64,000 nucleotides of DNA from the IMG/VR virus record IMGVR_UViG_3300046323_000587, positions 1 through 64,000 of that record. The stretch is one strand, 5' to 3'. The notes under the pieces are model-generated. The model did no database searches. It worked only from the letters and a program-made list of their open reading frames with translations, and was not told the origin of the DNA. Both the position numbers and the translations under genes were made by a program. Below, piece by piece: positions 4,036 to 56,512 of this stretch (within the stretch, counting starts at the first letter, position 1; each line of letters opens with the position of its first letter).

Positions 4036-4281
4036 ATGCTACCACAAGATATTGAAAAGAATTACGATAAAGATAGATTAAAATTAAGAGAAGAAAATAC
4101 TAGAAAGAAGTTAAAGGCTTTATCTATGGGTTATGAATATGTATTAAATGAGGGTTGGTATAATAATAAAGGAGAATTTCTTTGTAGAAATGGTAGTAAA
4201 TTAAACTTTAATATAACAGAATCAAATTATGCAAATTGGAGAAAACATAAAGAAGATAATATATTTAAAAGTCAAAACTAG
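4036..4281 (+). CDS. hypothetical protein
   Basis: 81-aa ORF overlapping the start of the next gene. Confidence 0.55.
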   Translation: MLPQDIEKNYDKDRLKLREENTRKKLKALSMGYEYVLNEGWYNNKGEFLCRNGSKLNFNITESNYANWRKHKEDNIFKSQN

Positions 4282-5131
4282 TTTATTAATAATCTTTTTA
4301 TTGGTAAGCTTTTATGGTATTTATAGAGTTGTAGTGAATATTTTGCAACCAAATCAAACAGTAGTTAATTTCAATAATATATTAAATAAATTACAAAATA
4401 CTCAACAAATAACTGTTTATGAGAAAATGGTGTTTTGTGATTCAATACATAAAAATAATGCTTTATTAAAAAGTTATAAACAATATTGTGAGTCAGGAAG
4501 TGAATTTATACAATTTGATTCAGTTTATAAAACCATACACAATAATAATCAATGGACAGATAGTTTAACTGTCCAAAAAACTAGTTATCAATCAACAATT
4601 AATTTTAAACAGGCTTATCAAAAAGAAAATATTTATTTAAATGGTTTATTAGTTTGGAAAGAATTTAAAATTTTAAGCGAAAATTACATAATTAATTCTT
4701 TTCAAGATTCTTTTAAAACTATTATTAATAAAAAAGATTTATTTCATATTTATTTTGGTCATCTATATTTTAATGATGCCTCTGAAACTTTCATCAAAAA
4801 ACTAAACTCGACTCAATTTATTGAAACTGATTTTAATTATGAGTTAAAAAACATTCTCTTTGATTTAGATATGTTATTTAAAAGAATTAACAATCAAAAT
4901 TTATTGTATTTTACAAGTAATGTAGGAAAAGATTCAACTAATTTTAGACTATATTTTAAAATAGATTTAAAACACTATTTATTATTCTTTGATTACAAAT
5001 CTATTATAAAACAACTTCAAATTAAATCATTTCTTGAAATAAAACAAAGTAAAATAAATACATTTATACATCAGAATAATGTTGATAGCTGTTTATTAAA
5101 ACACAATGTAAAATTATACTATAAAAAATAA
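4229..5131 (+). CDS. TM-anchored HIxxxH protein 1 (putative BECR/EndoU-like RNase toxin)
   Basis: Basic N-terminus, TM SLLIIFLLVSFYGIYRVVV, CX16C, DLFHIYFGH, late QIKSFLEI; function is inference. Confidence 0.55.
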   Translation: MQIGENIKKIIYLKVKTSLLIIFLLVSFYGIYRVVVNILQPNQTVVNFNNILNKLQNTQQITVYEKMVFCDSIHKNNALLKSYKQYCESGSEFIQFDSVYKTIHNNNQWTDSLTVQKTSYQSTINFKQAYQKENIYLNGLLVWKEFKILSENYIINSFQDSFKTIINKKDLFHIYFGHLYFNDASETFIKKLNSTQFIETDFNYELKNILFDLDMLFKRINNQNLLYFTSNVGKDSTNFRLYFKIDLKHYLLFFDYKSIIKQLQIKSFLEIKQSKINTFIHQNNVDSCLLKHNVKLYYKK

Positions 5132-5143
5132 ACCAAATTTGAA

Positions 5144-5845
5144 ATGTTTTCTACAAAAATATATACAGAAATATCTTTGATTTCAAGTCAAACAGCAAAA
5201 TATTTGTATTCTAGTTATAATATTCCAGTAACTTATGAAGAAGATTGTCCGTATATTGTAATACTAGAAATAGATATAAAAACAAAAGAGTACAGATTTT
5301 TATCAAAAAAAGAAAATAATGGTAATTATTTAAGATACACCTTAAAACAAATTAAATTTCTATTAGAAACACCTAATATAGAAGTATGTTCTTCAATAGA
5401 AGCTCTAGCAGATATTTTCTTTAAATACGATAATAAATTATATAGTTTTAACTCTTATGACATACAAAGACAAAGAATGTCTAATAAATTATTACATTAT
5501 AGAGATAGAGCTAAACCTTTATGGAATTTATTTAATGAAGGCGAATATTATTTATTTGATTTCGTATTATCACCAGAAACTATCGAGAATCTTGTACTTG
5601 ATAACAGAACTAAATTAATCAATGAAAAGTATTCTTTATCTCAGCAATATAAATCAATAGCTATTCCTGATTACATTGTTTCTCAAAAGCAATATGATTT
5701 TGTAATTGATTTATACAATAAAAACGGCTGGATTATTCAATATATTGATATAATGAATAATAGTGAAAATTGTTATATATCAAGTAATTTTTTAGATAAG
5801 TATTGTTTAGTTAAAGGTACAGACAAAATAATTAAAATTAAATAA
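5144..5845 (+). CDS. partner of toxin-like gene 1 (putative immunity)
   Basis: 233 aa, no signal or TM, starts 12 nt after gene 1. Confidence 0.45.
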   Translation: MFSTKIYTEISLISSQTAKYLYSSYNIPVTYEEDCPYIVILEIDIKTKEYRFLSKKENNGNYLRYTLKQIKFLLETPNIEVCSSIEALADIFFKYDNKLYSFNSYDIQRQRMSNKLLHYRDRAKPLWNLFNEGEYYLFDFVLSPETIENLVLDNRTKLINEKYSLSQQYKSIAIPDYIVSQKQYDFVIDLYNKNGWIIQYIDIMNNSENCYISSNFLDKYCLVKGTDKIIKIK

Positions 5846-5871
5846 ACTTAGTATAACTATAAAAAAAATTT

Positions 5872-6825
5872 ATGTTAGATACAATAAAAAAAGCAAATTC
5901 AAATAAAGTAAAGTTAGGTTTCGATAATAAATTATATAAAGTAAGTTCTCTATTAATAGTTATAACTATTTTATTAGCTTTAATATATTCTTATTTTATT
6001 ATTAAATCTGAAATTCCAGTTACACCCAAATACGAAGAGCAATTACTTCACAAACTTCAAAGTAAAGACGGAAATCTATCAAAAGAAGAAGTTCAAGTGT
6101 TATTAAATACTTATGGAAAATACAAGATACTTCAGATGCTTTTCACACAAGAGTTTATCGAAGAAAGTTATACTTATGAAGAATTTTTATTAGATTACAA
6201 AGAATTAAAAGATAAACCTATATTTAAAATAGCTTTGTTGTATGAAAAAATTAATTTAAATAAAAGTAGTAATAAAATTATTTTAAATCAATTATACAAT
6301 GAAAATAAAAGAAGAATAAATAAATCAAAACAAAAAAAGGAGTTAATAATTATAACTACTTGTTTAAAATATGTTTTATACAAAGAAATAATAAAAAATT
6401 TTAGGTCTGAACACATTTTTTACATAAAAGATATAAAAATAACTTTAAGTTTATTAAACTTCTTTCATATTTGGATTGGTCACGGTATAGATTATAAAAA
6501 AGATTTTAATATAATTATAGAAGAGCAAACTCTTACAAAAGTACCTGAGTTTAATTACTCTTCTCACAATTTAATATTAGATTTAGATTTTTTATTTTCT
6601 AAAGTAAATAGTTTAGATTTAGATATAAATAACGATTTAAATAAACATAATAAACTATATTTTAAATTTTGTAATTTAGATTATGTTATATCTTTACATA
6701 AAAATAAAGAAAAAGATTTTAATATTACTACAATGTATATAGAAAGCAATGATTATTTAATCAAGAATTTTAATGCATTTATCAGTGTAAACCATCAAAC
6801 AATATATTTTTATGGAAAAAAATAA
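5872..6825 (+). CDS. TM-anchored HIxxxH protein 2 (putative RNase toxin, clade A)
   Basis: TM LLIVITILLALIYSYFII, NFFHIWIGH, NITTMYIE; close paralog of 8631-9614. Confidence 0.6.
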   Translation: MLDTIKKANSNKVKLGFDNKLYKVSSLLIVITILLALIYSYFIIKSEIPVTPKYEEQLLHKLQSKDGNLSKEEVQVLLNTYGKYKILQMLFTQEFIEESYTYEEFLLDYKELKDKPIFKIALLYEKINLNKSSNKIILNQLYNENKRRINKSKQKKELIIITTCLKYVLYKEIIKNFRSEHIFYIKDIKITLSLLNFFHIWIGHGIDYKKDFNIIIEEQTLTKVPEFNYSSHNLILDLDFLFSKVNSLDLDINNDLNKHNKLYFKFCNLDYVISLHKNKEKDFNITTMYIESNDYLIKNFNAFISVNHQTIYFYGKK

Positions 6826-7231
6826 TAATTTTTATTTCTATTTTAAAGATTTTTTAAATAGAAATAAAATTTTAAATCTTTTAAAAGAAGAGAAAGTATT
6901 ATTAGAAGAAGATGAAGTTATCACAAATTGTAAAATAGAGAGTCTTGTTTTTTCTTTTAACACCATTAAAGAAAATAATACAAAATTTGGTAATGATATA
7001 CTAATAGAACAAGAAAATACAATAATAAATGTTGTAAAAGTATTAAAAAATATAAAAAATTTTACATATTTTAAGGATAGAATTGACATTTATCAACTAC
7101 CCAATGTGTTAAAATTTATTTCCAAATTTATCCTTACTAGCAAAGAATTAATAATAATAAAAAATCTTGATACTGAAGAAGAGTATTTAATAACTGAAAC
7201 AACAATTATAAATTGCCATAAATATTTATAA
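6812..7231 (+). CDS. family A partner (putative immunity)
   Basis: Overlaps the toxin stop; C-terminal SKELIIIKNLDTEEEYLITETTIINC. Confidence 0.55.
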   Translation: MEKNNNFYFYFKDFLNRNKILNLLKEEKVLLEEDEVITNCKIESLVFSFNTIKENNTKFGNDILIEQENTIINVVKVLKNIKNFTYFKDRIDIYQLPNVLKFISKFILTSKELIIIKNLDTEEEYLITETTIINCHKYL

Positions 7232-7232
7232 A

Positions 7233-7670
7233 ATGATAGACTTAAAAAATAGTTCTTTTTATTTTTCTTTTGTAGATATTATAGATAGAAATAGAATATT
7301 AAACATAGTAAAAAAGAATAATATTTTTATTTACTCTGACTACTTAATATTAAATCGCAACATACCTTATTTAATTTATTCAAATAATTATATTTCAGAT
7401 AAAACTACATTTTACGATAAAAAATATTATGTATTTGAAAATGAGTCTACTTTTTTTAATACAATTAAAATAATAAAAACATTAAAATCTTTCACTTATT
7501 TACAAATACCTGACAATTTTTTTGAATGTTTTGATTTAAGTAGACTTTTAACTAAATTTGTTTTTAATAGCAAAGAATTGATAGTAATTAAAGATCTTGA
7601 CACGAATGCAGAATATATTGTAACAGAAAAAACAACTATAAATTGTACTAGTTTTTTTATAAAATGTTAG
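7233..7670 (+). CDS. family A partner (putative immunity)
   Basis: SKELIVIKDLDTNAEYIVTEKTTINC. Confidence 0.55.
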   Translation: MIDLKNSSFYFSFVDIIDRNRILNIVKKNNIFIYSDYLILNRNIPYLIYSNNYISDKTTFYDKKYYVFENESTFFNTIKIIKTLKSFTYLQIPDNFFECFDLSRLLTKFVFNSKELIVIKDLDTNAEYIVTEKTTINCTSFFIKC

Positions 7671-8119
7671 ACTTAAAAAATAACTATTTTTATTTTTGTA
7701 TAAGAGATATAGAAAAAAATCAAGAACTTATAGAAAAAATAATGCTTAGACATAATTACACAGAACATTGGTTTTCTATTAATACAGAAGTATTTAAGAT
7801 AAATAACAAAACTAAAACAATCTCTGGTAATGGAAGTTCAACTTACTGTAATTATATATTAATAGAAAATCCTGCTGTATTAGACAATATATTAGATGTT
7901 TTAAATAAAGTAAATACTTTTGAATATCTTAAAGAAACTTATCCAAGAGAAGAACGTTATATACATAATAGTTTAACTACAGTTAATATGTTAGCTAGGT
8001 TTTTAATTAATTCAAAAGAATTAATCATTATTAAAGACCTAAAAACATTGAATGAATACATAGTAACAGAAAATAGAGTAATAGATTGCAATAAATATTT
8101 AACCACATTATCTAATTAA
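7664..8119 (+). CDS. family A partner (putative immunity)
   Basis: SKELIIIKDLKTLNEYIVTENRVIDC. Confidence 0.55.
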   Translation: MLDLKNNYFYFCIRDIEKNQELIEKIMLRHNYTEHWFSINTEVFKINNKTKTISGNGSSTYCNYILIENPAVLDNILDVLNKVNTFEYLKETYPREERYIHNSLTTVNMLARFLINSKELIIIKDLKTLNEYIVTENRVIDCNKYLTTLSN

Positions 8120-8124
8120 ATAAA

Positions 8125-8607
8125 ATGATAGACTATCCCACAAACAATAAATTAAATTTTGTATTAAGCACTTCTATTGATTTAGAAGAATTAGTTAATT
8201 TATTTGAATTAAATAAAGTAAAAATTCATTATAGACTTAAACACAACACTATATACAGATTAGTATTACTGAAAGAAGAAATTATATTAGATGTACCTAA
8301 CAGTAATATTTATTATACTATTACCAATATTAACACTTTTGTAAATTACTTTTCTGCAATAAAAGATACTGATACAACAACACCTATGTATATTATGAAT
8401 GGTGATGACGGTACAGGTGATTCAGAAATAGGTAAATTTCATTTTGATAAAGAACCAGAAGAAGAGGATTTTCCACAAACAAAAGCTTATATTAGTAAGT
8501 TTCTTTATGATGCAGTAGAGTTAATTATATTATCTGATGAACGGTTTAATTGGACATTGATAACAGAAAAAAGCATTGAAAATATAACTCTTACAGATGT
8601 AGAATAA
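8125..8607 (+). CDS. divergent family A partner (putative immunity)
   Basis: SKFLYDAVELIILSDERFNWTLITEKSI aligns with the family A C-terminus. Confidence 0.5.
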   Translation: MIDYPTNNKLNFVLSTSIDLEELVNLFELNKVKIHYRLKHNTIYRLVLLKEEIILDVPNSNIYYTITNINTFVNYFSAIKDTDTTTPMYIMNGDDGTGDSEIGKFHFDKEPEEEDFPQTKAYISKFLYDAVELIILSDERFNWTLITEKSIENITLTDVE

Positions 8608-8630: not shown

Positions 8631-9614
8631 ATGATAAAAACAAAAGAAAAAGTTGATAAGGTTGATAAGAAGAACAATTATAACCTAGGTTTTGATAACA
8701 AATTCTATAAAGCAAGTTCATTAGTAATAATTATTTCGATTTTATTAACAATAGTTTTTTCTATTTACCCAATAAAATCTGAAATTCCAATTACGCCTAG
8801 TTATGAAGAACAATTATTACAAAAATTACAGACTAAAGAGGGAAATTTATCAAAAGAAGAAGTTGAAATATTGTTGAATATTTATGGAAAATATAAAATT
8901 CTTCAAATGTTGTTTACTCAAGAGTTTATTGAGGAAGAATATACTTATGAAGAATTTTTATTAGATTACAAAGAGTTGAAAGATAAATTAATTTTTAAAA
9001 TTGCTTTGTTATATGATGAAAAAAATTTAATTGGCAAAAATGCTGTAACTAAAAACAAAGTTATTTTAAATATATTGGGTTCAGATAATAAAGCTAAATT
9101 AGAATATACAAAAGCAATTTATAAAGATTCTTTAAAAGCTGTATTAAATTGTTTAAAATATGTTGTTTATGGAGAAATTAGAAAAAAGTATGAACCTTTA
9201 TATATTTTTAAACTAAAAGATATAGAAATAAAATTTTATATAACCTATTTATACCATATTTGGACAGGACATTGTATAGACTATCAAAAAGATTTTAATA
9301 TTATGTTGAATAAAACAAATATTGTAGATACATTTTCAGAATTTAGAAGAATTAATATATTTTTAGATATTGGTTTTTACGTTCAAAAATTAAATGACTT
9401 GGATTTAGATTATAAGAAGATTTTAACTAACAATGAAAATTTATATTTTAAATTAGGAGAAGTTATATATTGTTTAAGAATTATTGTAAAAAACAATGAA
9501 TATATAATAGAAACTTATTATCCAAAGAATGAAATAGATCTTTCAAGTAAAAAAACAATTATTGAAATTAAACTTAACTATAAAACATATTTTTATTATG
9601 AACACAAAAAATAA
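8631..9614 (+). CDS. TM-anchored HIxxxH protein 3 (putative RNase toxin, clade A)
   Basis: TM SLVIIISILLTIVFSIYP, YLYHIWTGH, IIETYYPK (EndoU-like terminal strand). Confidence 0.6.
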   Translation: MIKTKEKVDKVDKKNNYNLGFDNKFYKASSLVIIISILLTIVFSIYPIKSEIPITPSYEEQLLQKLQTKEGNLSKEEVEILLNIYGKYKILQMLFTQEFIEEEYTYEEFLLDYKELKDKLIFKIALLYDEKNLIGKNAVTKNKVILNILGSDNKAKLEYTKAIYKDSLKAVLNCLKYVVYGEIRKKYEPLYIFKLKDIEIKFYITYLYHIWTGHCIDYQKDFNIMLNKTNIVDTFSEFRRINIFLDIGFYVQKLNDLDLDYKKILTNNENLYFKLGEVIYCLRIIVKNNEYIIETYYPKNEIDLSSKKTIIEIKLNYKTYFYYEHKK

Positions 9615-10044
9615 ATTTTATTTTTACATATACGATACAAAAGAAGACAAAACTCAAGTTGAAAATCTTTGTGTAAAGTATAATTTTATTTGTGACAATA
9701 CTCATCCTTGGTTTTCTGGAGATACAGAATTATATATTATTGATACAATAGAAAAAAATGTTTGGGGAGATAACATTTGTAGTTATGCTAATCGTATTAG
9801 TATAGAAGATATCAATTTTTTAGAAAACATTTTTATTGTATTGAGTAGTTTAACTCAGTTTGAATACTCTAAGAACACTTTTCACAGAGACGAAGATTAT
9901 CGTTACATAAATGGAAAAAAACTTTTAACTACTAGAGAAATGTTAGCTCAGTTTTTATTTAAAAGTAAAGAATTAGTTATTATAAAAGATTTAATAACAA
10001 AAAAAGAGTATTTAATAACAGAGAATAAAATAATTAAATGCTAA
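9598..10044 (+). CDS. family A partner (putative immunity)
   Basis: ATG at 9598 overlaps the toxin end (track start 9562 is TTG); SKELVIIKDLITKKEYLITENKIIKC. Confidence 0.55.
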   Translation: MNTKNKFYFYIYDTKEDKTQVENLCVKYNFICDNTHPWFSGDTELYIIDTIEKNVWGDNICSYANRISIEDINFLENIFIVLSSLTQFEYSKNTFHRDEDYRYINGKKLLTTREMLAQFLFKSKELVIIKDLITKKEYLITENKIIKC

Positions 10045-10048
10045 ATTA

Positions 10049-10495
10049 ATGAAAGATTACAATATACTTTCTTTTATAATATCCTATGAAATAAATAGAG
10101 AAAAATTACTAGCTTTATTAAAACAATCTAATGCAAATCTTCAAAATTTTTTTAACTTCGATGAACAGGAGCCTGGATATGTAATATACAATAATAAAAC
10201 TAATACTTTTTATAGTGATTTTAGTTATATTGTTACAAATACAATTAAAATAGAAAATGAAAATCTATTATTAAATGTATTGAAAGTATTAAAAACTCTA
10301 AATACATTTAATTATTTTATAGAAACAACTAGAATTTTAGAATTGCCTGATAAAAGTAAATTTATTTCTAGTCTTTTATTTAAAAGTAAACATTTAATCA
10401 TTATTAAAGATTTAGAAAATAATAAAGAATATTTAATAACAGAAGACAATATTGTTGATTGTAATGATTTTTTGTCTAAAAAAGTTTTAAACTAA
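10049..10495 (+). CDS. family A partner (putative immunity)
   Basis: SKHLIIIKDLENNKEYLITEDNIVDC. Confidence 0.55.
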   Translation: MKDYNILSFIISYEINREKLLALLKQSNANLQNFFNFDEQEPGYVIYNNKTNTFYSDFSYIVTNTIKIENENLLLNVLKVLKTLNTFNYFIETTRILELPDKSKFISSLLFKSKHLIIIKDLENNKEYLITEDNIVDCNDFLSKKVLN

Positions 10496-10497
10496 TT

Positions 10498-10956
10498 ATG
10501 GGTACAAAAAATAAATTTTATTTTTATATAGATTATAGAAAAGAAACAGAGGTTACTGAAATATGTAAAAAATATAAATTTTCTTATGACTATGATCCTC
10601 TTTGGTTTTCTTGTAATACAGAAATATATACTATTGATACAGAAAAAAAATACGTTTGGGGAGATACTGTTTATAATTACAATACTTCCATTGCGATAGA
10701 TAATCTAAATCTACTAGAAAATGTTTTTATTGTATTAAGCAATTTAATTGAATTTGAATACTCTAAAACTACTTTTCAAAGAGATGAAAAAGATTATAGT
10801 TATTTTAAAAATTCAACAACAAAAGAATTGATACCAAGAATCTTATTTAAAGATAAATATTTAATAATAATCAAGAATTTAATTACATTAGAGGAGTATC
10901 TAATTACTGAAAACAGAATTATAAATTGTATCGAATATTTAACTCAAAATAAATAA
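10498..10956 (+). CDS. family A partner (putative immunity)
   Basis: DKYLIIIKNLITLEEYLITENRIINC; close paralog of 9598-10044. Confidence 0.55.
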   Translation: MGTKNKFYFYIDYRKETEVTEICKKYKFSYDYDPLWFSCNTEIYTIDTEKKYVWGDTVYNYNTSIAIDNLNLLENVFIVLSNLIEFEYSKTTFQRDEKDYSYFKNSTTKELIPRILFKDKYLIIIKNLITLEEYLITENRIINCIEYLTQNK

Positions 10957-16528: not shown

Positions 16529-17551
16529 ATGACTGTACTAATATTAAAAATTAATAAAAAAAAAGTTATTAGAAAACAACCAAAGAATAAATTAACTATT
16601 AAATTATTATTTATTGTTAGTACAATCCTTTCAATAGGAATTTATTTTGTTTATAAAGAATATAAAGAAAGTTATTACAATGATTTAGAAATAAGACTAA
16701 TAAATAAACTTCCATTATCTCAAAAAGAAAAAAACGATTTATGTAAATATTTTTTAGGTACTGATAAAGAAAAATATAAAAAATATTGTTTAAATCAAGA
16801 TACTTCTATTAATAATTTATTAGAGAAATACCTATACAATAGAACAAATATTTCTTATACAGATAGTATAAAAATAGATTCAATTTATCTAGATTTCTTT
16901 AAAAAATTAGACAAAGCTAGATCAATAGAAAATAAAACTGGTAAAAATTTACTAACAGAATCTAAAAAAGTGGTAAATAGTTACAAAGAATATATAAGAA
17001 GAATTAAACATAAAATAAAATACAATGTATCTACAAAAGATATTTATTTATTGACTTTATATGTATATACTCAAATAACAAATGAGAAAATTTTAAATAA
17101 TTATGAGTTTTTTGTTTCTTATAAAAAACATAAGATTATAGTAAATAAATTTTCTTTATTACATATAATAGTTAGACATTATTTTATAAGCAATTATTAC
17201 ATAAATAACAATTCTACTTTATATAAATATACTACTTATAATGAATTAATCATAGAACTACAAAAATTTTTAAAAGCTATTTCTTTTTCTGAACAAATTG
17301 ATAAAACTGTATTATTTGAAAGTAGTCAATCTAAAGATATACAGAATTATAGTGTTTATATGTTTAATGATTCTGTAAAATTAGATTTACATCTAATTAA
17401 ACTTAAAAATACTTTTTTTGTTGAAACATTTTTTGTTCACGATAGTAGTGCAGTATCTAATTTATCTGACAATAGAAAAATAAAAACAACCAATTGTAAT
17501 TATTATAATCTAATTAATAACGTAAAAATATTTTATAAAGATGATAAATAA
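16529..17551 (+). CDS. TM-anchored HIxxxH protein 4 (putative RNase toxin, clade B)
   Basis: K-rich N-terminus, TM LLFIVSTILSIGIYFVY, CX14C, SLLHIIVRH, LYKYTTYNELI, FVETFFVH. Confidence 0.6.
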   Translation: MTVLILKINKKKVIRKQPKNKLTIKLLFIVSTILSIGIYFVYKEYKESYYNDLEIRLINKLPLSQKEKNDLCKYFLGTDKEKYKKYCLNQDTSINNLLEKYLYNRTNISYTDSIKIDSIYLDFFKKLDKARSIENKTGKNLLTESKKVVNSYKEYIRRIKHKIKYNVSTKDIYLLTLYVYTQITNEKILNNYEFFVSYKKHKIIVNKFSLLHIIVRHYFISNYYINNNSTLYKYTTYNELIIELQKFLKAISFSEQIDKTVLFESSQSKDIQNYSVYMFNDSVKLDLHLIKLKNTFFVETFFVHDSSAVSNLSDNRKIKTTNCNYYNLINNVKIFYKDDK

Positions 17552-17903
17552 TAACATAAAAGTAATTTGTAAACATTCACAAGATTTTGAATATTTAATT
17601 TTAGAGAATAAATTACCAATAGCAACTAAATATGTAGAAGAATCTAAAATTTTAAAAGAATTGTTAAATTATAAAGACTTTCTACCTTCTAGTTTTTATC
17701 TAAATTTACTTGATTTATTTATTGAACCTTGTGAAACAATAGAAAATTGTGAAGTAAATCCATATTATTTTTATTATTTTGATGAAGAAAGTTTGTACTC
17801 AATTAATGAATTTAAAAATTTATTGTTTAATAAAGAGTATATAACTAAAATAATTGTTAATTATAATTCAATAGAGATAGTATACAATATTTATAAAAAT
17901 TGA
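17541..17903 (+). CDS. family B partner (putative immunity)
   Basis: IKVIC..LPI..YLNLLDL..ITKIIVNYNSIEIVY; overlaps the toxin stop. Confidence 0.55.
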   Translation: MINNNIKVICKHSQDFEYLILENKLPIATKYVEESKILKELLNYKDFLPSSFYLNLLDLFIEPCETIENCEVNPYYFYYFDEESLYSINEFKNLLFNKEYITKIIVNYNSIEIVYNIYKN

Positions 17904-17907
17904 CACA

Positions 17908-18666
17908 ATGAAAAATACAAAGATTAAAGTTTTTTGTTTTAATAAATCTGAAACAAACTATGCAGAATTTTCTAATTTAATTCCAATATATTTAAGTGAA
18001 TATGTAGAAGAGTTTAAAAATATTTTTGGATTTGAAAACATTACTTCAAATAAAGTATTGCTAAATATAGACTTGTTATCAATAAAGAATATTTCTTACG
18101 AAAACTATACTGAGATGTTTTGTTTTAATCCAAATAATTTTTTACAAATAAGATTATTAAGAGAACTGTTTGATTTTAGTAGACATATTTCTTCAATACA
18201 AATAAAGAAAAATTCAATAGCTATTACTAAAACCAGTAAAGAAAACTATATCTACAAAAAAAAAGAATATATTCCTTTAAATTTAAATGAAAATAAAGAT
18301 TGTAGAGTAAGATATTGGTTTAGTAAAGGTTATGTTGATGGAAGCTTTTACTATGAACAAGTAAATAAAGTAAATATTAATTTAGGAATATATTTAAAAG
18401 AATTTGAAGAACTGTTTGGATTTAAAGACATATCAACTTCGAATATAATTTTAGATATTGAAAATAATACAATAGAGCCTAATACTTTTATTGAATATCT
18501 TAAAAAAGACGGTACACCAGAAATAGAATTTAATCCTCACATTATTTTTATTGTAGGTATTTTGAAAGAGTTGATTTCCAGTGATAAAATAAAAGCAGTT
18601 GATATCTATTCAGATAAAATAAAAATCGAAAAACATTCTAATACAAATATTTGTAATTATTATTAA
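17908..18666 (+). CDS. family B partner, two tandem domains
   Basis: 252 aa with two copies (IPIYLSEYVEEFKNIFGF / LGIYLKEFEELFGF). Confidence 0.55.
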   Translation: MKNTKIKVFCFNKSETNYAEFSNLIPIYLSEYVEEFKNIFGFENITSNKVLLNIDLLSIKNISYENYTEMFCFNPNNFLQIRLLRELFDFSRHISSIQIKKNSIAITKTSKENYIYKKKEYIPLNLNENKDCRVRYWFSKGYVDGSFYYEQVNKVNINLGIYLKEFEELFGFKDISTSNIILDIENNTIEPNTFIEYLKKDGTPEIEFNPHIIFIVGILKELISSDKIKAVDIYSDKIKIEKHSNTNICNYY

Positions 18667-18672
18667 TGCTTT

Positions 18673-19011
18673 ATGAAAATAATTTGTAAACAGTTTATTG
18701 ACAATTCTTATAAAGCATATATAAATAAAATACCAATTTTAGCAAGACATAAAAAAGATTGTTATAATATATTAGATAACGATTTTTTATTAGAAAAAGA
18801 ATATATAACTAAAACTTTTTATTACTTAGATTTAACAGATTTATCTATACAAATTGCTTCTGAAATTTCAATTGAATATAATTATTATTTATTAGATCAA
18901 GAAAATCAACAATCGGTCGATTTTTTAAGTAATATTTTAATTGATTTATCTAGTATTTCTCAAATTATTATAGAAGAAAATAATATACAAATAACTTATA
19001 AATATAAATAA
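18673..19011 (+). CDS. family B partner (putative immunity)
   Basis: MKIIC..IPI..YYLDLTDL..ISQIIIEENNIQITYKY. Confidence 0.55.
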   Translation: MKIICKQFIDNSYKAYINKIPILARHKKDCYNILDNDFLLEKEYITKTFYYLDLTDLSIQIASEISIEYNYYLLDQENQQSVDFLSNILIDLSSISQIIIEENNIQITYKYK

Positions 19012-19012
19012 T

Positions 19013-19369
19013 ATGGATCAAGATAGAATAGAAGTAATTTGTTGGAATAACGAATTGAATACTTCTGAAAAATTTTATAATGAGATTCCTATCTATATTG
19101 GTGAATATAAAAAAGAGTTTAAAGATTTATTTGCTGTTTCTAGTATAATAGAAGATTATGTTTTTATAGATTTAGTAAATTTAAAAGTAAGTAATCTTAA
19201 AATATCAGAAGAGAATAAAAAATATTGGAAACAATGGATTCAATTTCATCCTGATAACAGTTTCTTAATTAAGAAACTAAAAGAGATTCTTAAATACTCT
19301 GAAAATGTTGATAAAATAGAAATAAAGCAAAATGAATTAATTATTCAGTATAAAATAAATAATAATTAA
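19013..19369 (+). CDS. family B partner (putative immunity)
   Basis: IEVIC..IPIYIGEY..FIDLVNL..VDKIEIKQNELIIQY. Confidence 0.55.
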   Translation: MDQDRIEVICWNNELNTSEKFYNEIPIYIGEYKKEFKDLFAVSSIIEDYVFIDLVNLKVSNLKISEENKKYWKQWIQFHPDNSFLIKKLKEILKYSENVDKIEIKQNELIIQYKINNN

Positions 19370-19371
19370 TT

Positions 19372-19746
19372 ATGATACAAGTAATATGCGAACACAGAAA
19401 TAATGAAGAACCTTTGATTTTAATTGATAAGTTACCTATATCAGGACCATTTCAAGAAGACATAAATAAATTAACTTCTTTTCTTAATATTTCTAAGATA
19501 AACCACACAGACTTTTATTTAAATTTAATTGACTTTACTGCAATAGAGACAGAGGAATTCTTTTTTGATGATAATAATTTATATTGCTATTTTTATTTAG
19601 ATACAGATTATCAAGATTCATTAAATCAATTGAAACATATTGTAAATAATGTATCTAATATAAAAAGTATAACAATAAAGTTTGAGTCTATTTTAATAGA
19701 ATATTATAGTCATACTAATTTTGTAGACGTACATAAATTAATGTAA
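19372..19746 (+). CDS. family B partner (putative immunity)
   Basis: IQVIC..LPI..YLNLIDF..IKSITIKFESILIEY. Confidence 0.55.
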   Translation: MIQVICEHRNNEEPLILIDKLPISGPFQEDINKLTSFLNISKINHTDFYLNLIDFTAIETEEFFFDDNNLYCYFYLDTDYQDSLNQLKHIVNNVSNIKSITIKFESILIEYYSHTNFVDVHKLM

Positions 19747-20769: not shown

Positions 20770-20779
20770 AATATTAAAT

Positions 20780-32437: not shown

Positions 32438-32929
32438 ATGGATATTTTAGAAAAAATAAAAGAAAAACATAATACTTGTGTAAATATATTAGAAATAGAT
32501 CCAAACAATCTTTTAGATTTACCAGAAGAGTATAGAAATTTTAGTAATTGTAAAGGCGTGGAAGACTCTTACGAAGCTTTAGATTATGCTAGTAGAATTG
32601 GTTATATTACAATAGTAGATTTGGAAAAAAATGAAATTTATATTGACAATGCATTAAAAAAATTCCCTAATTGTATAGATGTTGGATTTGAAAATACCTT
32701 ATTTTTAAAACATTTTTTAGATGAGTTTAATAAAACAAAATCTGTATTTTATTTTAAACATTGTCCAAAAGAAAGTCATTGGAGATACACTCTTATAATA
32801 GCGACATTTGATGAAGGAATATCTTGGAAATTATACCCTTATGAATCAACGTTATCAGAAATAGAAAAATACATTTCTGGAAAACAAATTATTAAAACAG
32901 TTTACGATCTTAAAGATATTATTAATTAA
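32438..32929 (+). CDS. family C partner (putative immunity)
   Basis: YRNFSNC..TIVDLEKNEI..LIIATFDEGISWKLYP. Confidence 0.55.
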   Translation: MDILEKIKEKHNTCVNILEIDPNNLLDLPEEYRNFSNCKGVEDSYEALDYASRIGYITIVDLEKNEIYIDNALKKFPNCIDVGFENTLFLKHFLDEFNKTKSVFYFKHCPKESHWRYTLIIATFDEGISWKLYPYESTLSEIEKYISGKQIIKTVYDLKDIIN

Positions 32930-32942: not shown

Positions 32943-33041
32943 ATGTTTAAAATAAATACAGTTCCAAATAAAGTAAGACATTTTAGTTCTGAAATTAAAT
33001 GAAACTTCACATTAAACTATTTTATCTATATAAAACCATAA
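32943..33041 (+). pseudogene. internally deleted toxin-like gene (N- and C-termini joined)
   Basis: MFKINTVPNK..*NFTLNYFIYIKP*; 33851-34807 starts MFKINQEP and ends NYFIYIKP*. Confidence 0.8.
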
Positions 33042-33046
33042 AAAAT

Positions 33047-33850: not shown

Positions 33851-34807
33851 ATGTTTAAAATAAATCAAGAACCAGTAATAAAGAGAGAAAACTCTTCTAA
33901 TAAATTATTAAATAATAAACACTTAATATTCATTGGAATAATTTTAATCTCTATTGGAGTTTCTCAATGTTTAGGTTTAGTAGAATTTCATTCAAAAGAA
34001 AAGGAGTTATTACAACGTTATAAGAACAAGGAACCTTTAACTGAATTAGAGAAATTTGAATTATGTGAATGGTTAAGTGAAAATAAAAGTTATGAAAAGG
34101 AGTTTAAAGAGATTTGTGAGAGTAAGTTAGATACTACTGTAAAAGGTGGGGCAGAGTATGATAAAGAATTTATTCAGTTTATAAATAAAAATAATAAATA
34201 TCTTCTTACAAACAAAGAAATAAAGAAATTATATAAAAATCTAAGTCCTATGGTAAAAAAAAGAAATAAGTATGAAAGATCTTTTGTTTATAAAACAAGT
34301 CTTGATCTATGGTTTCAATTAAATAAAGAGGTTCCTAACGGGTTTATTTATTCTACTATGAGTAATGATTATAAAATTAAAATATCTATTGATGATTTTT
34401 TACATATTGTATTAAGACATCAAGTATTTGAAAATTATTTAAATTTTACATTAAATAAAAAAGAAACTCAATTTGAAACAGAAGACCAAAAATTTTATTT
34501 AAAAGATGTTTTATGGAGTATAGAAACTATTTTTAGATCTCTGACACCTCAGAGTTTATATAGGTTTGTAAGTAGGTTAAATATAAATTCTAGGCCTACA
34601 ACTTATCAACTAATTATTTGTTATCTTAACACAACCAAAGAAGAAGAATTTTATAACATACATTTTAGTATACAAACAGATACTCTTTATATTAAAACTT
34701 TTCATAGAAATAAAAACTATACAGAAAAAATCTTACTAGATTCAGGAAATATTAAAGAACAACTAAGTAAATTTCAACCTAACTACTTTATTTATATTAA
34801 ACCGTAA
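33851..34807 (+). CDS. TM-anchored HIxxxH protein 6 (putative RNase toxin, clade C)
   Basis: TM LIFIGIILISIGVSQCLGLV, CX16C, DFLHIVLRH, YIKTFHRN. Confidence 0.6.
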   Translation: MFKINQEPVIKRENSSNKLLNNKHLIFIGIILISIGVSQCLGLVEFHSKEKELLQRYKNKEPLTELEKFELCEWLSENKSYEKEFKEICESKLDTTVKGGAEYDKEFIQFINKNNKYLLTNKEIKKLYKNLSPMVKKRNKYERSFVYKTSLDLWFQLNKEVPNGFIYSTMSNDYKIKISIDDFLHIVLRHQVFENYLNFTLNKKETQFETEDQKFYLKDVLWSIETIFRSLTPQSLYRFVSRLNINSRPTTYQLIICYLNTTKEEEFYNIHFSIQTDTLYIKTFHRNKNYTEKILLDSGNIKEQLSKFQPNYFIYIKP

Positions 34808-34816
34808 AAAAATATT

Positions 34817-36740: not shown

Positions 36741-37736
36741 GTGTTTAGATTAAATCAACTACCAAAAGAAGTAAACACTAAAAAATCAAATTTAGCTACT
36801 AAAATACTAATTCTAGTTTCTATTATAGTATCTATTTATTATTGGGAAGATCTATTAAAGTTGCTCACTGATTTGTTTAGTAGTAACAATATTGAAAAAC
36901 AATACATTAAAAAACTAGAAAACAATGAACGACTAAATGATTCAGAAAGACAATATATTTGTAACTATTTCTTAAATATTGGAGATACAAGTAGTTACAA
37001 TAAATACTGTTTAAATGTTGTAGATGATAAATTTCAAGTTTTGTTTGAAAGATATGTTCAAGATGAAAATTCTATTTCACAAGAAGAATTTGAATATATA
37101 TTTAACACAGCAGAAACCTTTAAATACTTATGTGAACAAGTAAGTGGAGACACTATAAAAGGCGATAAATTACAGAGAGAATGTCAAAAAACAATGAAAA
37201 GTATAACAAAAAATAAAGATGTAAAACATTTAAAAAAACATCTTTTAAAGTGGTATTATATGTTTTATATTTATAACGAGATTGTAAAAGAAGCTAATTT
37301 AAATGGTCTCAATCTAAAATATAAGGTGTATAAAACAGATTCTACTTATATTTATGTTAAACTATTAAATACTTCTTTATTACATATTAAATATAAACAC
37401 TATGAACTAAAAAGTTTTACAGAATCTGAAATTTCTTTATTTAAAAATTATACTTATTACGATGAATTAATAAGAGATTTAAATGAAATCTTTAAATATA
37501 TTACACTAAATAGATTGAAATTAAATAAAATTAATTTTAATACACTTGATCTAGACCTTTATTTAATTTATTTAATTATTAATGATTTGCCGATGACTCT
37601 ATACATTGATAAAGCAACTAATGTTATTACTACTTTTTATATAGAAGAAAAAGATTTTGATAATAAACTGTTGAAAATACAAAATAGTGACACTTTAAAA
37701 TTAAATAAGTATATTAAAATTCTAATTAAAAAATGA
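36741..37736 (+). CDS. TM-anchored HIxxxH protein 7 (putative RNase toxin, clade B)
   Basis: GTG start MFRLNQLP, TM ILILVSIIVSIYYW, CX15C, SLLHIKYKH, YTYYDELIRDL, VITTFYIE. Confidence 0.6.
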   Translation: MFRLNQLPKEVNTKKSNLATKILILVSIIVSIYYWEDLLKLLTDLFSSNNIEKQYIKKLENNERLNDSERQYICNYFLNIGDTSSYNKYCLNVVDDKFQVLFERYVQDENSISQEEFEYIFNTAETFKYLCEQVSGDTIKGDKLQRECQKTMKSITKNKDVKHLKKHLLKWYYMFYIYNEIVKEANLNGLNLKYKVYKTDSTYIYVKLLNTSLLHIKYKHYELKSFTESEISLFKNYTYYDELIRDLNEIFKYITLNRLKLNKINFNTLDLDLYLIYLIINDLPMTLYIDKATNVITTFYIEEKDFDNKLLKIQNSDTLKLNKYIKILIKK

Positions 37737-38080
37737 GACATATTCCAGTAAAATATTATTTTGGTAATACACCAGACACAGAATATAAAGTATACGATGA
37801 AATTATATTGTATGATACACTTTGTTTACATACTTTTAATGGTGAAGAATGGGTAGAATATGTTTTAAATTTAAATACATTTAAATTAATATGCACACCT
37901 TTTTTTCTATCTGTTTATCTATTTAATAATCACCGTACTTACGAATCAGTAATTTTTTATATTAAACAACACATTTCTAAAATTAGTTCTATGGAAATTA
38001 ATCGAGAAAGTGACTTAATTATTAATTTTAATGATGGTAGAATTAAAACATTCGAAGCTTATTACCAATATTATATATAA
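37733..38080 (+). CDS. family B-like partner (putative immunity)
   Basis: ATGA overlap with the toxin stop; YVLNLNTF..ISKISSMEI. Confidence 0.55.
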   Translation: MRHIPVKYYFGNTPDTEYKVYDEIILYDTLCLHTFNGEEWVEYVLNLNTFKLICTPFFLSVYLFNNHRTYESVIFYIKQHISKISSMEINRESDLIINFNDGRIKTFEAYYQYYI

Positions 38081-38091
38081 TTAAATATTCT

Positions 38092-38451
38092 ATGAGAAAT
38101 ATACCTGTTACTTATCCTACATCATTAGCAGAAACTTTTATTATTAAATATCAAACAAGACTTCCTGTTAATATTACAACATTAACTTTATCAAATACTT
38201 TATTTTACACATATAAACATAAAGATTACATATTAAATTTAAATACCTTGGAATCAATACAAATTTCTTTTTATTTAGATATACAATACTACGAAAATGA
38301 GATATATTGTAAATATAGTTTAGATTGTATAAAAAAAGAAATACACAAGATAAAATCAATTAAAGTAATTACACATTTACAAGATTGCAATAAAGAAATA
38401 ATAAAATTATTAGTAACGTATAAAGATAATTCAACAAAAATTTATGTTTAG
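38092..38451 (+). CDS. family B-like partner (putative immunity)
   Basis: MRNIPV..YILNLNTL..IHKIKSIKV. Confidence 0.55.
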   Translation: MRNIPVTYPTSLAETFIIKYQTRLPVNITTLTLSNTLFYTYKHKDYILNLNTLESIQISFYLDIQYYENEIYCKYSLDCIKKEIHKIKSIKVITHLQDCNKEIIKLLVTYKDNSTKIYV

Positions 38452-38794
38452 AACTTGTTTACATGAAATACAATATAATTCAATATGGTGTTTACATCAC
38501 ACAGATTATAATAAATTAAATAGAATTTATGACGAAGAAAATGTATCATTAGGTAATACAATTTGTATGTATTTTCAAGGTCGTCAACAAATATTTGATA
38601 CAGAATTACTAGAAATTAAAGAAATCCCTTTTGATTTTGGTGTTTATTATTTTAATAATCTAGAAAAAGAAGAAGAAGTTGTAAATACTGTTTTAGAACA
38701 TTATTTAAATATTGATTCTGTTGAAATAACAAAAGAGTCTATGATTATTACATTAAAAGATAAAACAGCATTTACTTTTGAATCTAAATTTTAA
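38444..38794 (+). CDS. family B-like partner (putative immunity)
   Basis: IFDTELL..PFDFGVYYF..IDSVEITKESMIITL. Confidence 0.5.
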   Translation: MFRTCLHEIQYNSIWCLHHTDYNKLNRIYDEENVSLGNTICMYFQGRQQIFDTELLEIKEIPFDFGVYYFNNLEKEEEVVNTVLEHYLNIDSVEITKESMIITLKDKTAFTFESKF

Positions 38795-54416: not shown

Positions 54417-54659
54417 ATGAAAATAAACTATAAATTTAATAAAAGTATTGAAAGTAGAGATTGTGTTGTAGAAAGTGTAGAGTTAGAAATTCTAGTGTAT
54501 ACACTATATAAAAAATTAACTTTACAAACATTTACAGAAGCATTAAACAATGCTAAGGAATCAAAAGATAATTTTTTAATTGGTGGTAATAAAGGAGAAG
54601 GAATTTGTAAACAGTTGGAATCTTTATATAAACAAGAAACTAAGCAATTTACATCTTAA
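54417..54659 (+). CDS. hypothetical protein
   Basis: 80-aa ORF. Confidence 0.55.
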   Translation: MKINYKFNKSIESRDCVVESVELEILVYTLYKKLTLQTFTEALNNAKESKDNFLIGGNKGEGICKQLESLYKQETKQFTS

Positions 54660-54859
54660 CAAGACCTAAAATACTACATCAACACAATACAAGAACCAAT
54701 AGAGTTTATAGCTGAATCTGATATAGATCAAGTGTTAATGAAAGAATGGGTTGGTGAATGGGAATATAAAACTATACCCTTATCTACTAAACATTTGAGT
54801 ATAGTTAAAACAGGTTCACCAAAACTTAATTCAAATTGGACACTTAAAATTAAATAATT

Positions 54860-55870
54860 ATGGAAATTAAAGAATCGAGCAATAAAACTAAAATAGGTTT
54901 TAATAAATTAACTATTAAGTATTCAAAATATGTGATTATAGTAGCTATACTTTTATCTAGTATAGTCGCTATTTTTTACAATCAAGAAAATAATGAAATT
55001 ACTTATATTAAAAGTTTAGAATTAAAATTAGATAGGAAAGAAGATTTAACTAATGAAGAACATCATTATTTATGTAGACATTACTTAAATTATAACTTAG
55101 ATAAATATTATCTACACTGTCTAAATCAAACAGAACAAGAATCTAAGTTTGTTTCATTATTTGAAATGTTTCTAAATGATTCTAATAGTATTTCAGATGT
55201 AGAAAAGAAATTTTTAGATAGTTTAACTCAAGATTTTATTGTTAAGTGTACAAAAGAAACTTCTTATAATAAGAAAAATTTATATGTAGAAGCAACAAAA
55301 ATATATAAAAGTTTTACATCTGTTGAACAAGATAAATTAAAGAAAAATGTAAATTATGTACCAAAAACCAAACTAAATATCTATAAAATACTTTATTATG
55401 TGTTCATTAAATTATCAAGAGAAAAAAGCTTATTGACATTAAATTATGTGTATAATATAAATGATATTGTAATTACAATAGACACAACAAGTTTATATCA
55501 TATAATTTCTAGACATTATCAATATAAGTATTTAAATGATAACAAATCAAGTTTATATAAATATGAAAACTACGATGAATTGATTTTAGATTTAAATAGA
55601 ATTTTGTTTGCTTTACAATTAAATAAAGAAATATTTAAAGATGTATTTTATCTTAATGGAAACAATGGAACAATATATTTGTTTACACAAGAGTATCAAT
55701 TAGATATACATTTTAATAGAATTAATAATTTTCACTATAAAGTAATTACTTTTTATATCTATGATCCAAGTGAAGTAATAAGAAAAGATCATAGACCTAA
55801 TAGAATTTTAAATAAAAAAGAAATAAAATTATTTAACGATTGTAAAATATATAAAGTAAATGAAAATTAA
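54860..55870 (+). CDS. TM-anchored HIxxxH protein 8 (putative RNase toxin, clade B)
   Basis: TM YVIIVAILLSSIVAIFY, CX14C, SLYHIISRH, LYKYENYDELILDL, KVITFYIY. Confidence 0.6.
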   Translation: MEIKESSNKTKIGFNKLTIKYSKYVIIVAILLSSIVAIFYNQENNEITYIKSLELKLDRKEDLTNEEHHYLCRHYLNYNLDKYYLHCLNQTEQESKFVSLFEMFLNDSNSISDVEKKFLDSLTQDFIVKCTKETSYNKKNLYVEATKIYKSFTSVEQDKLKKNVNYVPKTKLNIYKILYYVFIKLSREKSLLTLNYVYNINDIVITIDTTSLYHIISRHYQYKYLNDNKSSLYKYENYDELILDLNRILFALQLNKEIFKDVFYLNGNNGTIYLFTQEYQLDIHFNRINNFHYKVITFYIYDPSEVIRKDHRPNRILNKKEIKLFNDCKIYKVNEN

Positions 55871-56168
55871 TTATTGCGGTTCTTACTACTACAATTCTAA
55901 AATAGTAGAAGAAAATAAATTATTTGTTTGTTTTATTACAGAAGATGAAAAACCTTTTGAAGAATTTGAACATTTTGAAGAATATTGGTTTGATTTTAGT
56001 ACAAACACAAAAATTAAAGAGCTTACTCAAATAGAGCTTAATCCTTTATATGTAGATTGTTCAATACCAATTGAAAAAGAGATATATACTACAATTAAGA
56101 AACACAATAAAAACATATCTGAAATAGATATTCAGCAGAATAAAGTTAAAATAACTTATAAGTATTAA
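55860..56168 (+). CDS. family B-like partner (putative immunity)
   Basis: Overlaps the toxin stop; WFDFST..PLYVD..ISEIDIQQNKVKITYKY. Confidence 0.55.
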   Translation: MKINYCGSYYYNSKIVEENKLFVCFITEDEKPFEEFEHFEEYWFDFSTNTKIKELTQIELNPLYVDCSIPIEKEIYTTIKKHNKNISEIDIQQNKVKITYKY

Positions 56169-56173
56169 TTATA

Positions 56174-56512
56174 ATGGAAAGTAATTATTCTGAATACAAT
56201 GGAAAAAATCTAAATGTTTATTATGAAAAACATTGTAATACATTCTACAATGACAGCATTTTTGTACACTTTATTAATTGTTTAGATGATTCTATTAATA
56301 ATAGATCTTTTTGGATAAATTTAAATACATTAGAAAGAGTAGAAGAACTTAAACAAGTAAATATTATTCCTTTTTATGTAGATTTTAATTCTGAATTAGT
56401 TAAAGATATTTATTATTTATTACTAAATTATTACAAATCAATAGAAAAAGTAAGTTTTAATGAATTTGAAATAGAAGTAACTTATAATTATTATAATGTA
56501 CAAGATTTTTAA
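56174..56512 (+). CDS. family B-like partner (putative immunity)
   Basis: FWINLNTL..PFYVD..IEKVSFNEFEIEVTY. Confidence 0.55.
   Translation: MESNYSEYNGKNLNVYYEKHCNTFYNDSIFVHFINCLDDSINNRSFWINLNTLERVEELKQVNIIPFYVDFNSELVKDIYYLLLNYYKSIEKVSFNEFEIEVTYNYYNVQDF

Follow-up and report, generated by a model that had tools for sequence, protein, structure and literature searches.

Membrane-anchored H-I-x3-H proteins and their small-gene arrays in a probable Bacteroidota jumbo phage: a candidate family of tethered effectors and inhibitors

Why should a large virus of bacteria carry eight diverged copies of one membrane protein, each with a set of small genes directly behind it? The question is raised by the first 64 kb of the IMG/VR record IMGVR_UViG_3300046323_000587 (226,480 bp in total), the stretch of DNA that was analysed here and that is called the window below. 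Eight of its genes encode membrane-anchored proteins, here named anchors, which share an H-I-x3-H motif in their C-terminal parts and are followed by one to five small genes, the partners. The expansion of this two-part cassette is lineage-specific. Since all the C-terminal domains are homologous, the anchors are an expanded paralogous family and not a classical polymorphic toxin with swapped modules. Our favoured reading, held tentatively and at less than even chances, is that the anchors are exported, membrane-tethered effectors of the BECR type (Barnase-EndoU-ColicinE5/D-RelE) and that the partners are their cognate cytoplasmic inhibitors.

Eight anchors and the arrays behind them

The eight intact open reading frames (ORFs) of 300-340 amino acids (aa) lie exactly where an earlier inspection of the window, the original prediction, had placed them, and its description of a common architecture is borne out by the ORF positions and by clustering. 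BLASTP at E<1e-3 joins exactly these eight, which are approximately 20% identical to one another, and no other window ORF of at least 60 aa joins them. The shared plan consists of a K/R-rich basic N-terminal tail, one transmembrane (TM) helix, a helical stalk and a C-terminal domain (C-domain). The sole strongly hydrophobic segment of each anchor is N-terminal (Kyte-Doolittle 1.6-2.6 over 19 residues) and no second one was found. Gly, Ser and Thr abound in the TM segments, and conservation is lowest in the predicted cytoplasmic tails. The anchors, referred to below by their first position, are the following (the clades are described in the next section):

4229..5131, + strand: anchor 1, 300 aa; a lone lineage with the motif FHIYFGH and S in place of T on the late strand
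5872..6825, + strand: anchor 2, 317 aa; clade I, without the stalk Cys pair
8631..9614, + strand: anchor 3, 327 aa; clade I, a recent paralogue of 5872, without the stalk Cys pair
16529..17551, + strand: anchor 4, 340 aa; clade III, with a hairpin (16468-16497) just upstream
31433..32407, + strand: anchor 5, 324 aa; clade II, target of the full-length AlphaFold model
33851..34807, + strand: anchor 6, 318 aa; clade II
36741..37736, + strand: anchor 7, 331 aa; clade III, GTG start
54860..55870, + strand: anchor 8, 336 aa; clade III, 27% identical to the outside homologue P0008, target of the C-domain AlphaFold model

All eight motif strings listed in the original prediction were reproduced exactly. 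The H, I and H of the motif are invariant, and the two His, spaced i and i+5, are kept in 15 of 15 sequences when seven homologues from outside the window are included. A Glu of the stalk helix is invariant in the eight window anchors and nearly so among the 15. Further on, a column in a late strand holds T in 12 sequences and S in three, and it is followed by two aromatic positions with one Met and one His as the only exceptions. The LC motif proposed for the stalk stands in part: its cysteine is found in most anchors, but both it and a partner Cys are absent from the clade of 5872 and 8631.

The count of 21 downstream genes was likewise reproduced, and the linkage of the anchors to small-gene arrays is real. 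The gaps between each anchor and the next gene are, in order, 12, -14, -53, -11, 30, 9, -4 and -11 nt; the value of -53 becomes -17 if an internal ATG at 9598 is the true start of the 9562 gene. The close spacing that had been claimed (overlapping, or within approximately 30 nt) is thereby seen, but the overlaps by themselves are weak evidence of coupling because overlapping starts are ordinary throughout this densely packed genome. Together, the anchors and the 21 genes cover 16.8 kb, about a quarter of the window and somewhat less than the 18 kb first estimated. The arrays are composed as follows:

5144..5845, + strand: partner of anchor 1; a single 233-aa gene without a paralogue in the window, isoelectric point (pI) 6.6
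6812..8607, + strand: famA array of anchor 2; four genes (6812-7231, 7233-7670, 7664-8119, 8125-8607)
9562..10956, + strand: famA array of anchor 3; three genes (9562-10044 with probable start ATG 9598, 10049-10495, 10498-10956)
17541..19746, + strand: famB array of anchor 4; five genes (17541-17903, 17908-18666, 18673-19011, 19013-19369, 19372-19746)
32438..32929, + strand: famC partner of anchor 5; 163 aa
34817..35634, + strand: famC partners of anchor 6; two genes (34817-35215, 35239-35634)
37733..38794, + strand: famB-like partners of anchor 7; three genes (37733-38080, 38092-38451, 38444-38794)
55860..56512, + strand: famB-like partners of anchor 8; two genes (55860-56168, 56174-56512)

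Family famA (seven genes) is clear at the BLAST level, and the genes of its first array share the C-terminal motif SKELIIIKDL..EYLITE. Family famC has three intact and two decayed genes. The ten genes of famB fall into four BLAST subclusters; its three array-level sub-alignments match mutually by hhalign with E values of 1e-3 to 8e-5, compared to 0.1-0.5 for the famA and famC controls. One famB partner, of 252 aa (17908-18666), is a tandem duplicate of the famB unit fused in a single reading frame. Neither signal peptides nor TM segments were found in the partners. Their median pI is 5.15, compared to 6.8 for 76 other window ORFs (Mann-Whitney p=0.007), and the C-domains are, on the opposite side, basic (pI 8.8-9.4).

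A few features adjoin the cassettes. The hairpin at 16468-16497, a 12-bp stem followed by a T-run, is the sole terminator-like hairpin in 4-21 kb and lies 32 nt upstream of the 16529 anchor. A search for a shared promoter gave no conserved motif upstream of the anchors, and a scan for sigma-70-type promoters returned fewer sites than shuffled sequence did. In the clade I block, the last famA partner is directly followed by a 456-aa AAA ATPase (10959-12329; PF00004, E 1.6e-13), and no equivalent is seen after the other partner arrays.

Relatives, divergence and turnover

A profile search against 1.84 billion representative proteins returned only 13 matches, six of which were the window's own. 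Among the seven outside homologues (P0007 to P0013), P0007 and P0008 lie 7 kb apart on one phage-like 23-kb contig (L002), P0009 is on a 272-kb jumbo-phage contig, and P0010 and P0011 are on contigs too short for classification. The remaining two, P0012 and P0013, are bacterial and have no TM helix; P0013 derives from a Bacteroidetes metagenome-assembled genome. An abutting or overlapping gene follows five of the seven, which are all the TM-bearing ones, and the context of P0007, P0008 and P0009 is clearly phage-like. P0012 (250 aa) follows an 81-aa HTH_3 gene at a distance of 178 nt (contig L006, region 1713-2888), and the surrounding defence island includes a type III restriction-modification system, a DUF5655 protein and two GmrSD-type genes.

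Other searches added no relatives. Nothing meaningful was found for anchors or partners in scans of Pfam, PHROGs, NCBIfam and PADLOC, and PDB sequence profile searches gave no relevant match for the anchors. There was no anchor match by tblastn in 50,697 phage records. Word-indexed searches with the full-length, C-domain and famB alignments retrieved only proteins of this contig and the already included P0013. A scan of a genome collection with P0012 found nothing, and with P0013 only its own Bacteroidetes genome.

In a maximum-likelihood tree that includes the outside sequences, three anchor clades are supported (bootstrap 93-98). Clade I comprises 5872, 8631 and P0009, clade II 31433, 33851 and P0010, and clade III 16529, 36741, 54860, P0007 and P0008; 4229 stands alone. 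Within the window each clade has a partner family of its own: famA goes with clade I, famC with clade II and famB with clade III.

The anchors do not all diverge in the same manner. The youngest pair, 5872 and 8631, has 80-93% identity in the stalk (residues 46-128), while the identity of the C-domain is 17-57% per 30-residue window and mostly below 40%. Over the larger parts the values are 69% (N-part) and 35% (C-part), and this is the sole pair with a conserved N-part; across the family, pairwise identity averages 23% (N-part) and 20% (C-part), and older pairs diverge evenly along their length. Nei-Gojobori estimates for 5872 and 8631 give a dN/dS of approximately 0.09 for the stalk and 0.84 for the C-domain at similar synonymous divergence, rough figures as dS is near saturation, so that evolution of the C-domain is approximately ninefold faster than that of the stalk. 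Conserved codons show a similar third-position identity all along the gene, and recent gene conversion is therefore disfavoured.

The partners change faster still, as can be seen at the locus of anchor 8, which is syntenic with that of P0008. The synteny is marked by the gene upstream of the anchor:

54417..54659, + strand: 80-aa gene upstream of anchor 8

Over its first 25 residues, the product is 84% identical to that of the gene at 7510-7917 of L002, and the remainder differs (80 and 136 aa in total). Identity between the two anchors is 27% (E 8e-24). At each locus there are two partners, alike in size but without significant similarity from one locus to the other, and therefore the position and number of partners are kept while their sequences change fastest. 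An initial impression that partner families are kept between phages was rejected by hhalign. Taken as a whole, the anchor family shows clear signs of an arms race.

Turnover of whole cassettes has left its traces as well. Between anchors 5 and 6 lie the remains of a ninth cassette:

32943..33041, + strand: ninth anchor remnant; approximately 20 N-terminal codons like those of 33851, then a stop, then the last 12 codons
33084..33821, + strand: degenerate famC-like frames (33084-33380 and 33384-33821)

The interior of the ninth anchor gene is deleted, and its 3' end is 87% identical over 31 nt to positions 34781-34811. The first of the two frames matches the famC profile with an E value of 4.5e-5 and has an early stop; the second matches at 2e-10 and has no start codon before 33555. 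This decayed cassette (32943-33821) is direct evidence of cassette turnover within the tandem clade II block.

As for the genome setting, the window resembles a jumbo phage's accessory or early region, and the 226-kb phage probably infects Bacteroidota. The GC content is 21%, nearly all genes are on the + strand, and the recognisable genes encode helicase-like proteins, an AAA ATPase, an EcoRI-type adenine methyltransferase, T5orf172, YopX, an RNA ligase and a DUF4326 protein. Genes for lysogeny were not identified in the window. Stop-codon reassignment, tRNAs and Rfam elements were considered for the ORF-poor stretches and rejected, as none of them was found in the window. The methyltransferase (42405-43361; PF13651, E 9e-84) has no recognised restriction enzyme next to it and is presumably an anti-restriction self-methylase. 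Three more pairs of small paralogues, unrelated to the anchors (20449-21232; 21590-21913 and 25494-25877; 41657-42079 and 44515-44952), show that gene duplication is common in this region. Two short adjacent ORFs of 52 and 80 aa at 13600-14067 are possibly halves of one split gene, and contig L004 has a cpYpsA-domain gene in a comparable accessory region. The RNA ligase is at 28691-29329 (PF09414, E 3e-28), and a PNKP-like protein (AAA_33 and HAD_PNKP; 3450-4328) is encoded on L002, the contig of P0007 and P0008. T4 deploys RNA-repair enzymes of this kind against host anticodon nucleases, and the two genes may be relevant if RNases are in play.

Fold, topology and the favoured reading

Two AlphaFold models were obtained, one of full-length 31433 (15 sequences, mean pLDDT 68) and one of the 54860 C-domain (13 sequences, mean pLDDT 71); the C-domain itself has a pLDDT of approximately 71-80 in the two. 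In both, its predicted order of elements is a long helix, a beta hairpin, the H-I-x3-H helix, one or two helices, a meander of three to four strands, a helix and a closing hairpin, and the T/S position is placed on the last meander strand. In the 54860 model the motif is on helix 49-65 and the T/S column on strand 132-140.

At the core of the BECR fold, a helix packs against an antiparallel sheet of four strands. Ahead of this core comes a group-specific pre-alpha helix, in some cases together with a pre-beta strand; in the RelE-like group the additions are a pre-beta strand and an extension at the C-terminus. The colicin-like layout has a pre-alpha helix, an alpha helix and strands beta1-beta4; its catalytic His is carried by the N-terminal (pre-alpha) helix and its Thr/Ser by the terminal strand. 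The phage BECR (PBECR) domains often have additional strands ahead of the pre-alpha helix, and a helix His goes together with a C-terminal Thr/Ser in five of the six families (PMC5512222; bioRxiv 10.64898/2026.08.28.747851). The predicted layout of the anchor C-domain is compatible with both the colicin-like and the RelE-like descriptions, and according to the alignment and the models its His would be on the pre-alpha helix and its Thr/Ser on the terminal strand. The original prediction had taken the H-I-x3-H string as a BECR signature. The placement of the His and Thr/Ser residues is indeed that of the literature, and the two models agree on it, but the string itself is not an established signature.

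The fold search leans the same way, weakly. Among the matches of the 54860 C-domain, ranks 1, 2, 4-7, 14, 15, 21-23 and 35 are HigB2, BrnT, HigBA, XendoU, CdiA-CT and ParE2 entries, and BECR entries, two CdiA-CT complexes among them, are over-represented in this list of weak, non-significant matches. We put the chances that the C-domain is BECR-like at a little better than even. Other enzymatic readings were rejected. P0012 alone has a PADLOC match to CARF_PDDEXK (E 9.8e-5, 19.6 bits); there is no conserved D or (D/E)xK on the strands and no PD-(D/E)xK structure among the fold matches, and the PD-(D/E)xK reading was therefore dropped. So was a metallopeptidase of HExxH or DPP-III type for the H-x4-H spacing, because the residue after the first His is the invariant Ile and not Glu.

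Topology had been left out of consideration in the original prediction. In 13 of 13 TM-bearing sequences the 15 residues on the N-side of the TM helix are more net positive than the 15 on the C-side. The two stalk Cys columns are both occupied in 11 of 15 sequences and both empty in 5872, 8631 and P0012; only P0009 has one alone. By the positive-inside rule and by the disulfide logic of a co-occurring Cys pair, the stalk and the C-domain are predicted to lie outside the cytoplasm, which would mean the periplasm if the host is a member of Bacteroidota.

On these grounds, the favoured reading of a tethered effector with its inhibitors would run as follows. The first part of the cassette would be a single-pass protein with a short basic cytoplasmic tail, a TM helix and a conserved stalk that is disulfide-capable in most clades, and it would present a basic, fast-evolving alpha+beta C-domain with the element order of RelE/colicin-like BECR domains. 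The second part would be the one to five small, mostly acidic, signal-less proteins of the family that matches the anchor clade. The C-domain may act as a metal-independent effector of the RNase type, exported by the infected cell and tethered on the outside of the inner membrane. The proteins encoded downstream would be cognate cytoplasmic inhibitors of the fraction that is not yet exported or that re-enters the cytoplasm. Such an inhibitor would guard the cytoplasm of the producer while the enzyme acts elsewhere, as in barnase/barstar and in colicins with their immunity proteins, and extra array members could cover the variants of related phages.

A number of points weigh against this reading. 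First of all, the assignment of the fold is challenged from several sides. The comparison of the 54860 C-domain model with the PDB by Foldseek, as the original prediction had suggested, gave no significant match (best HigB2, E 0.084, TM-score 0.41 target-normalised and 0.27 query-normalised), and alpha+beta rolls of NTF2-like, cystatin-like and LolA-like type are intermixed among the weak matches. The full-length 31433 model matched no BECR or other relevant entry in the PDB and BFVD, and the PDB-sequence profile search matched no BECR entry. No BECR, PBECR or RelE family of Pfam (PBECR1-5, RelE, HigB, ParE, BrnT, DUF4258, Colicin_D and others) was detected at E<=1 in the eight anchors and the seven outside homologues at full length, nor at E<=10 in 13 C-domains. 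The models themselves were built from only 13-15 sequences and have a mean pLDDT of 68-71.

In addition, the predicted topology sets the C-domain apart from RNA and from the signal-less partners, and an RNase tethered outside the cytoplasm has no obvious substrate. Translocation or delivery domains (T5SS/CdiA, Rhs, T6SS PAAR/VgrG, T7SS LXG/WXG and MuF, from the type V, VI and VII secretion systems and others) were not found in the anchors in Pfam, PHROG and NCBIfam, which agrees with the earlier remark that no MuF, RHS, CdiA or T6SS domain is visible. The partners yielded no recognisable immunity, antitoxin or DNA-binding domain, whether ribbon-helix-helix (RHH) or helix-turn-helix (HTH), in the library scans, and their homology between phages is undetectable by hhalign. 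Whole-cassette duplication alone could yield the match of clades to partner families. Finally, a strictly lytic phage has no clear need of immunity to its own effector.

A bolder form of the favoured reading goes further. Jumbo phages of Bacteroidota would possess a hitherto undescribed viral effector-immunity system, in which a diversifying BECR-type RNase is exported and membrane-tethered and its inhibitors are kept in arrays. The signal-anchor and the stalk would serve without known secretion machinery, the target would be competing phages or neighbouring cells, and the route of delivery or presentation would be new. We regard this extended form as unlikely.

Alternative readings and known systems

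The strongest competitor of the favoured reading is rather unlikely in our estimation, and it makes the C-domain a non-catalytic or at least non-nuclease alpha+beta roll of the NTF2, cystatin or LolA type, held outside the cytoplasm on the inner membrane and acting on the envelope. It might serve in superinfection exclusion, in receptor masking or in the binding of periplasmic ligands or metals through the two His, and the partners would be unrelated cytoplasmic early genes that were duplicated along with it. In their predicted N-in/C-out topology and their Cys pair, the anchors are built as phage exclusion proteins, such as T4 Sp and similar proteins, usually are, and NTF2-like, iota-carbonic anhydrase, cystatin-like and LolA entries fill much of the weak fold list, while no nuclease family is matched by sequence. 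Duplication of whole cassettes would suffice for the clade-to-partner match, and overlapping genes are common throughout the window. Yet the His...His pair and the Thr/Ser, kept across sequences of 15-25% identity, are more typical of a catalytic site, and the top-ranked fold matches are BECR toxins. The TM-less bacterial P0012 and P0013 show that the domain works without export. Moreover, the charge complementarity of C-domains and partners would have to be coincidence, and the order of an anchor followed by small genes recurs in other phage contigs although the partners have fully diverged.

It is less probable still that the topology prediction is wrong and that the cassette is a membrane-tethered module like a toxin-antitoxin (TA) system within the infected cell. 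The BECR-like domain would face the cytoplasm like that of ToxM and the partners would be antitoxins, used for the shut-off of host translation, for its timing or for the exclusion of co-infecting phages. ToxM/ToxR is an example of a type II TA-like module with a TM-bearing BECR toxin (PMC11980606). A cytoplasmic C-domain would also bring toxin, inhibitor and RNA together, as the lack of signals in the partners would lead one to expect; P0012 adjoins an HTH gene in a defence island, the top fold matches are type II TA toxins, and these phages carry RNA-repair genes (the RNA ligase and the PNKP-like gene). Against it stand the 13 of 13 TM-bearing members with a more positive N-side and one hydrophobic segment, for which a C-out orientation is predicted, and the co-occurrence of the stalk Cys, which suggests a disulfide and hence an oxidising compartment. 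In addition, the domain order is the reverse of that in ToxM, and the partners have no RHH or HTH domain.

T4 holin T consists of a cytoplasmic tail, to which RIII binds, a single TM helix and a large, disulfide-containing periplasmic domain. The anchors resemble it in overall architecture and predicted topology, and their Gly/Ser/Thr-rich TM segments recall releasable signal-anchor domains; nevertheless, a role in lysis timing or envelope sensing with small cytoplasmic modulators bound to the tail is very improbable, as eight diverged copies with clade-specific arrays are unexpected for lysis, the cytoplasmic tails show the lowest conservation of any part, no match to a holin or antiholin family or structure was obtained, and the genes are among early-type accessory genes and not in a lysis cassette.

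If the reading of anchors as tethered RNases with cytoplasmic inhibitors is true, a large phage would for the first time be seen to anchor an effector-immunity family in the membrane of its host, and a virus, not a bacterium, would hold a diversifying toxin repertoire with spare immunity genes. It would also raise the question of the role of an exported RNase during infection. Even if the enzymatic guess is wrong, a nearly orphan family with a catalytic-looking invariant motif that takes up, with its partners, a quarter of a 64-kb early region is a well-defined target for studies of unknown phage biology.

How, then, do the anchors compare with known systems? No membrane-anchored phage family like this one is mentioned in the PBECR/polyvalent-protein paper, in the 2021 jumbo-phage survey or in the 2026 BECR classification. 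The anchors resemble colicin-like BECR and PBECR domains in the predicted extra strands, pre-alpha helix, alpha helix and beta meander and in the placement of His and Thr/Ser (PMC5512222; bioRxiv 10.64898/2026.08.28.747851). As with PBECR, they are phage-borne, their domain is basic and a small gene lies immediately 3'. Unlike PBECR, they have an N-terminal TM helix and a stalk in place of MuF, portal or polyvalent fusions, two invariant His, and eight copies per genome that are located among early accessory genes and not virion genes, and they show neither a sequence match nor a significant fold match.

The best matches in the fold search, weak as they are, are to toxins of the RelE/HigB/BrnT/ParE kind (HigB2 5jaa_D, BrnT 3u97, Streptococcus pneumoniae HigBA 6af3/6af4 and ParE2 7r5a). 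The predicted layout of pre-beta, pre-alpha, alpha, beta1-4 and a C-terminal extension is also that of RelE-type toxins, and the order of toxin first and partner second is that of higBA. The anchor domain is, however, approximately 175 aa long as compared to 90-110 aa, belongs to no Pfam family, and is membrane-anchored and predicted to be exported. Unlike type II TA antitoxins, the anchor partners have no DNA-binding domain and form arrays of up to five genes.

With the polymorphic toxins (contact-dependent inhibition, Rhs, T7SS LXG/EsaD-EsaG and MuF systems; PMC3482391, PMC9484751) the cassettes share a (here putative) effector that is followed at once by a small gene, tandem arrays of diverged partners, a conserved N-part with a fast C-part (in the youngest pair), and decayed or orphan cassettes. 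In position and layout the arrays resemble immunity arrays, with one to five paralogous genes, gaps of -53 to +30 nt and one decayed cassette. The original prediction of a polymorphic toxin-immunity system thus keeps the acidic partners of basic C-domains, the fast C-domain and the cassette decay in its favour, but the C-domains are all homologous and partner homology between phages is undetectable. The anchors differ from polymorphic toxins in that they have no recognised delivery domain, do not swap unrelated toxin folds and diverge uniformly among older paralogues, and in being encoded by a large phage with no lysogeny gene identified in the window. The RNase part of that prediction fares similarly, with the element order and a weak fold lean on one side, and no Pfam match at E<=10 and no significant fold match on the other. 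The anchors should accordingly not be filed as BECR or polymorphic toxin members, although they may work like them: the sequence tests for BECR Pfam families fail, and delivery domains and module swapping are lacking.

Barnase-barstar offers a parallel for the proposed division of labour between an exported BECR-fold RNase and an acidic cytoplasmic inhibitor that protects the producer. Barnase is, however, freely secreted, single-copy and bacterial, and the anchors show no sequence match or significant fold match to it.

Among described systems, ToxM/ToxR alone links a BECR-fold domain to a TM segment and has a small partner gene next to it, and the anchors share this combination in so far as their domain is BECR-like. 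ToxM is bacterial, has an N-terminal cytoplasmic BECR domain followed by the TM segment and a periplasmic C-domain, and is preceded by an RHH/HTH antitoxin gene (PMC11980606). In the phage anchors the TM helix comes first and the BECR-like domain, predicted to be extracytoplasmic, comes last, and the partners are downstream and not DNA-binding. If the favoured reading is true, the anchors would represent a new BECR architecture, the reverse of that of the bacterial ToxM.

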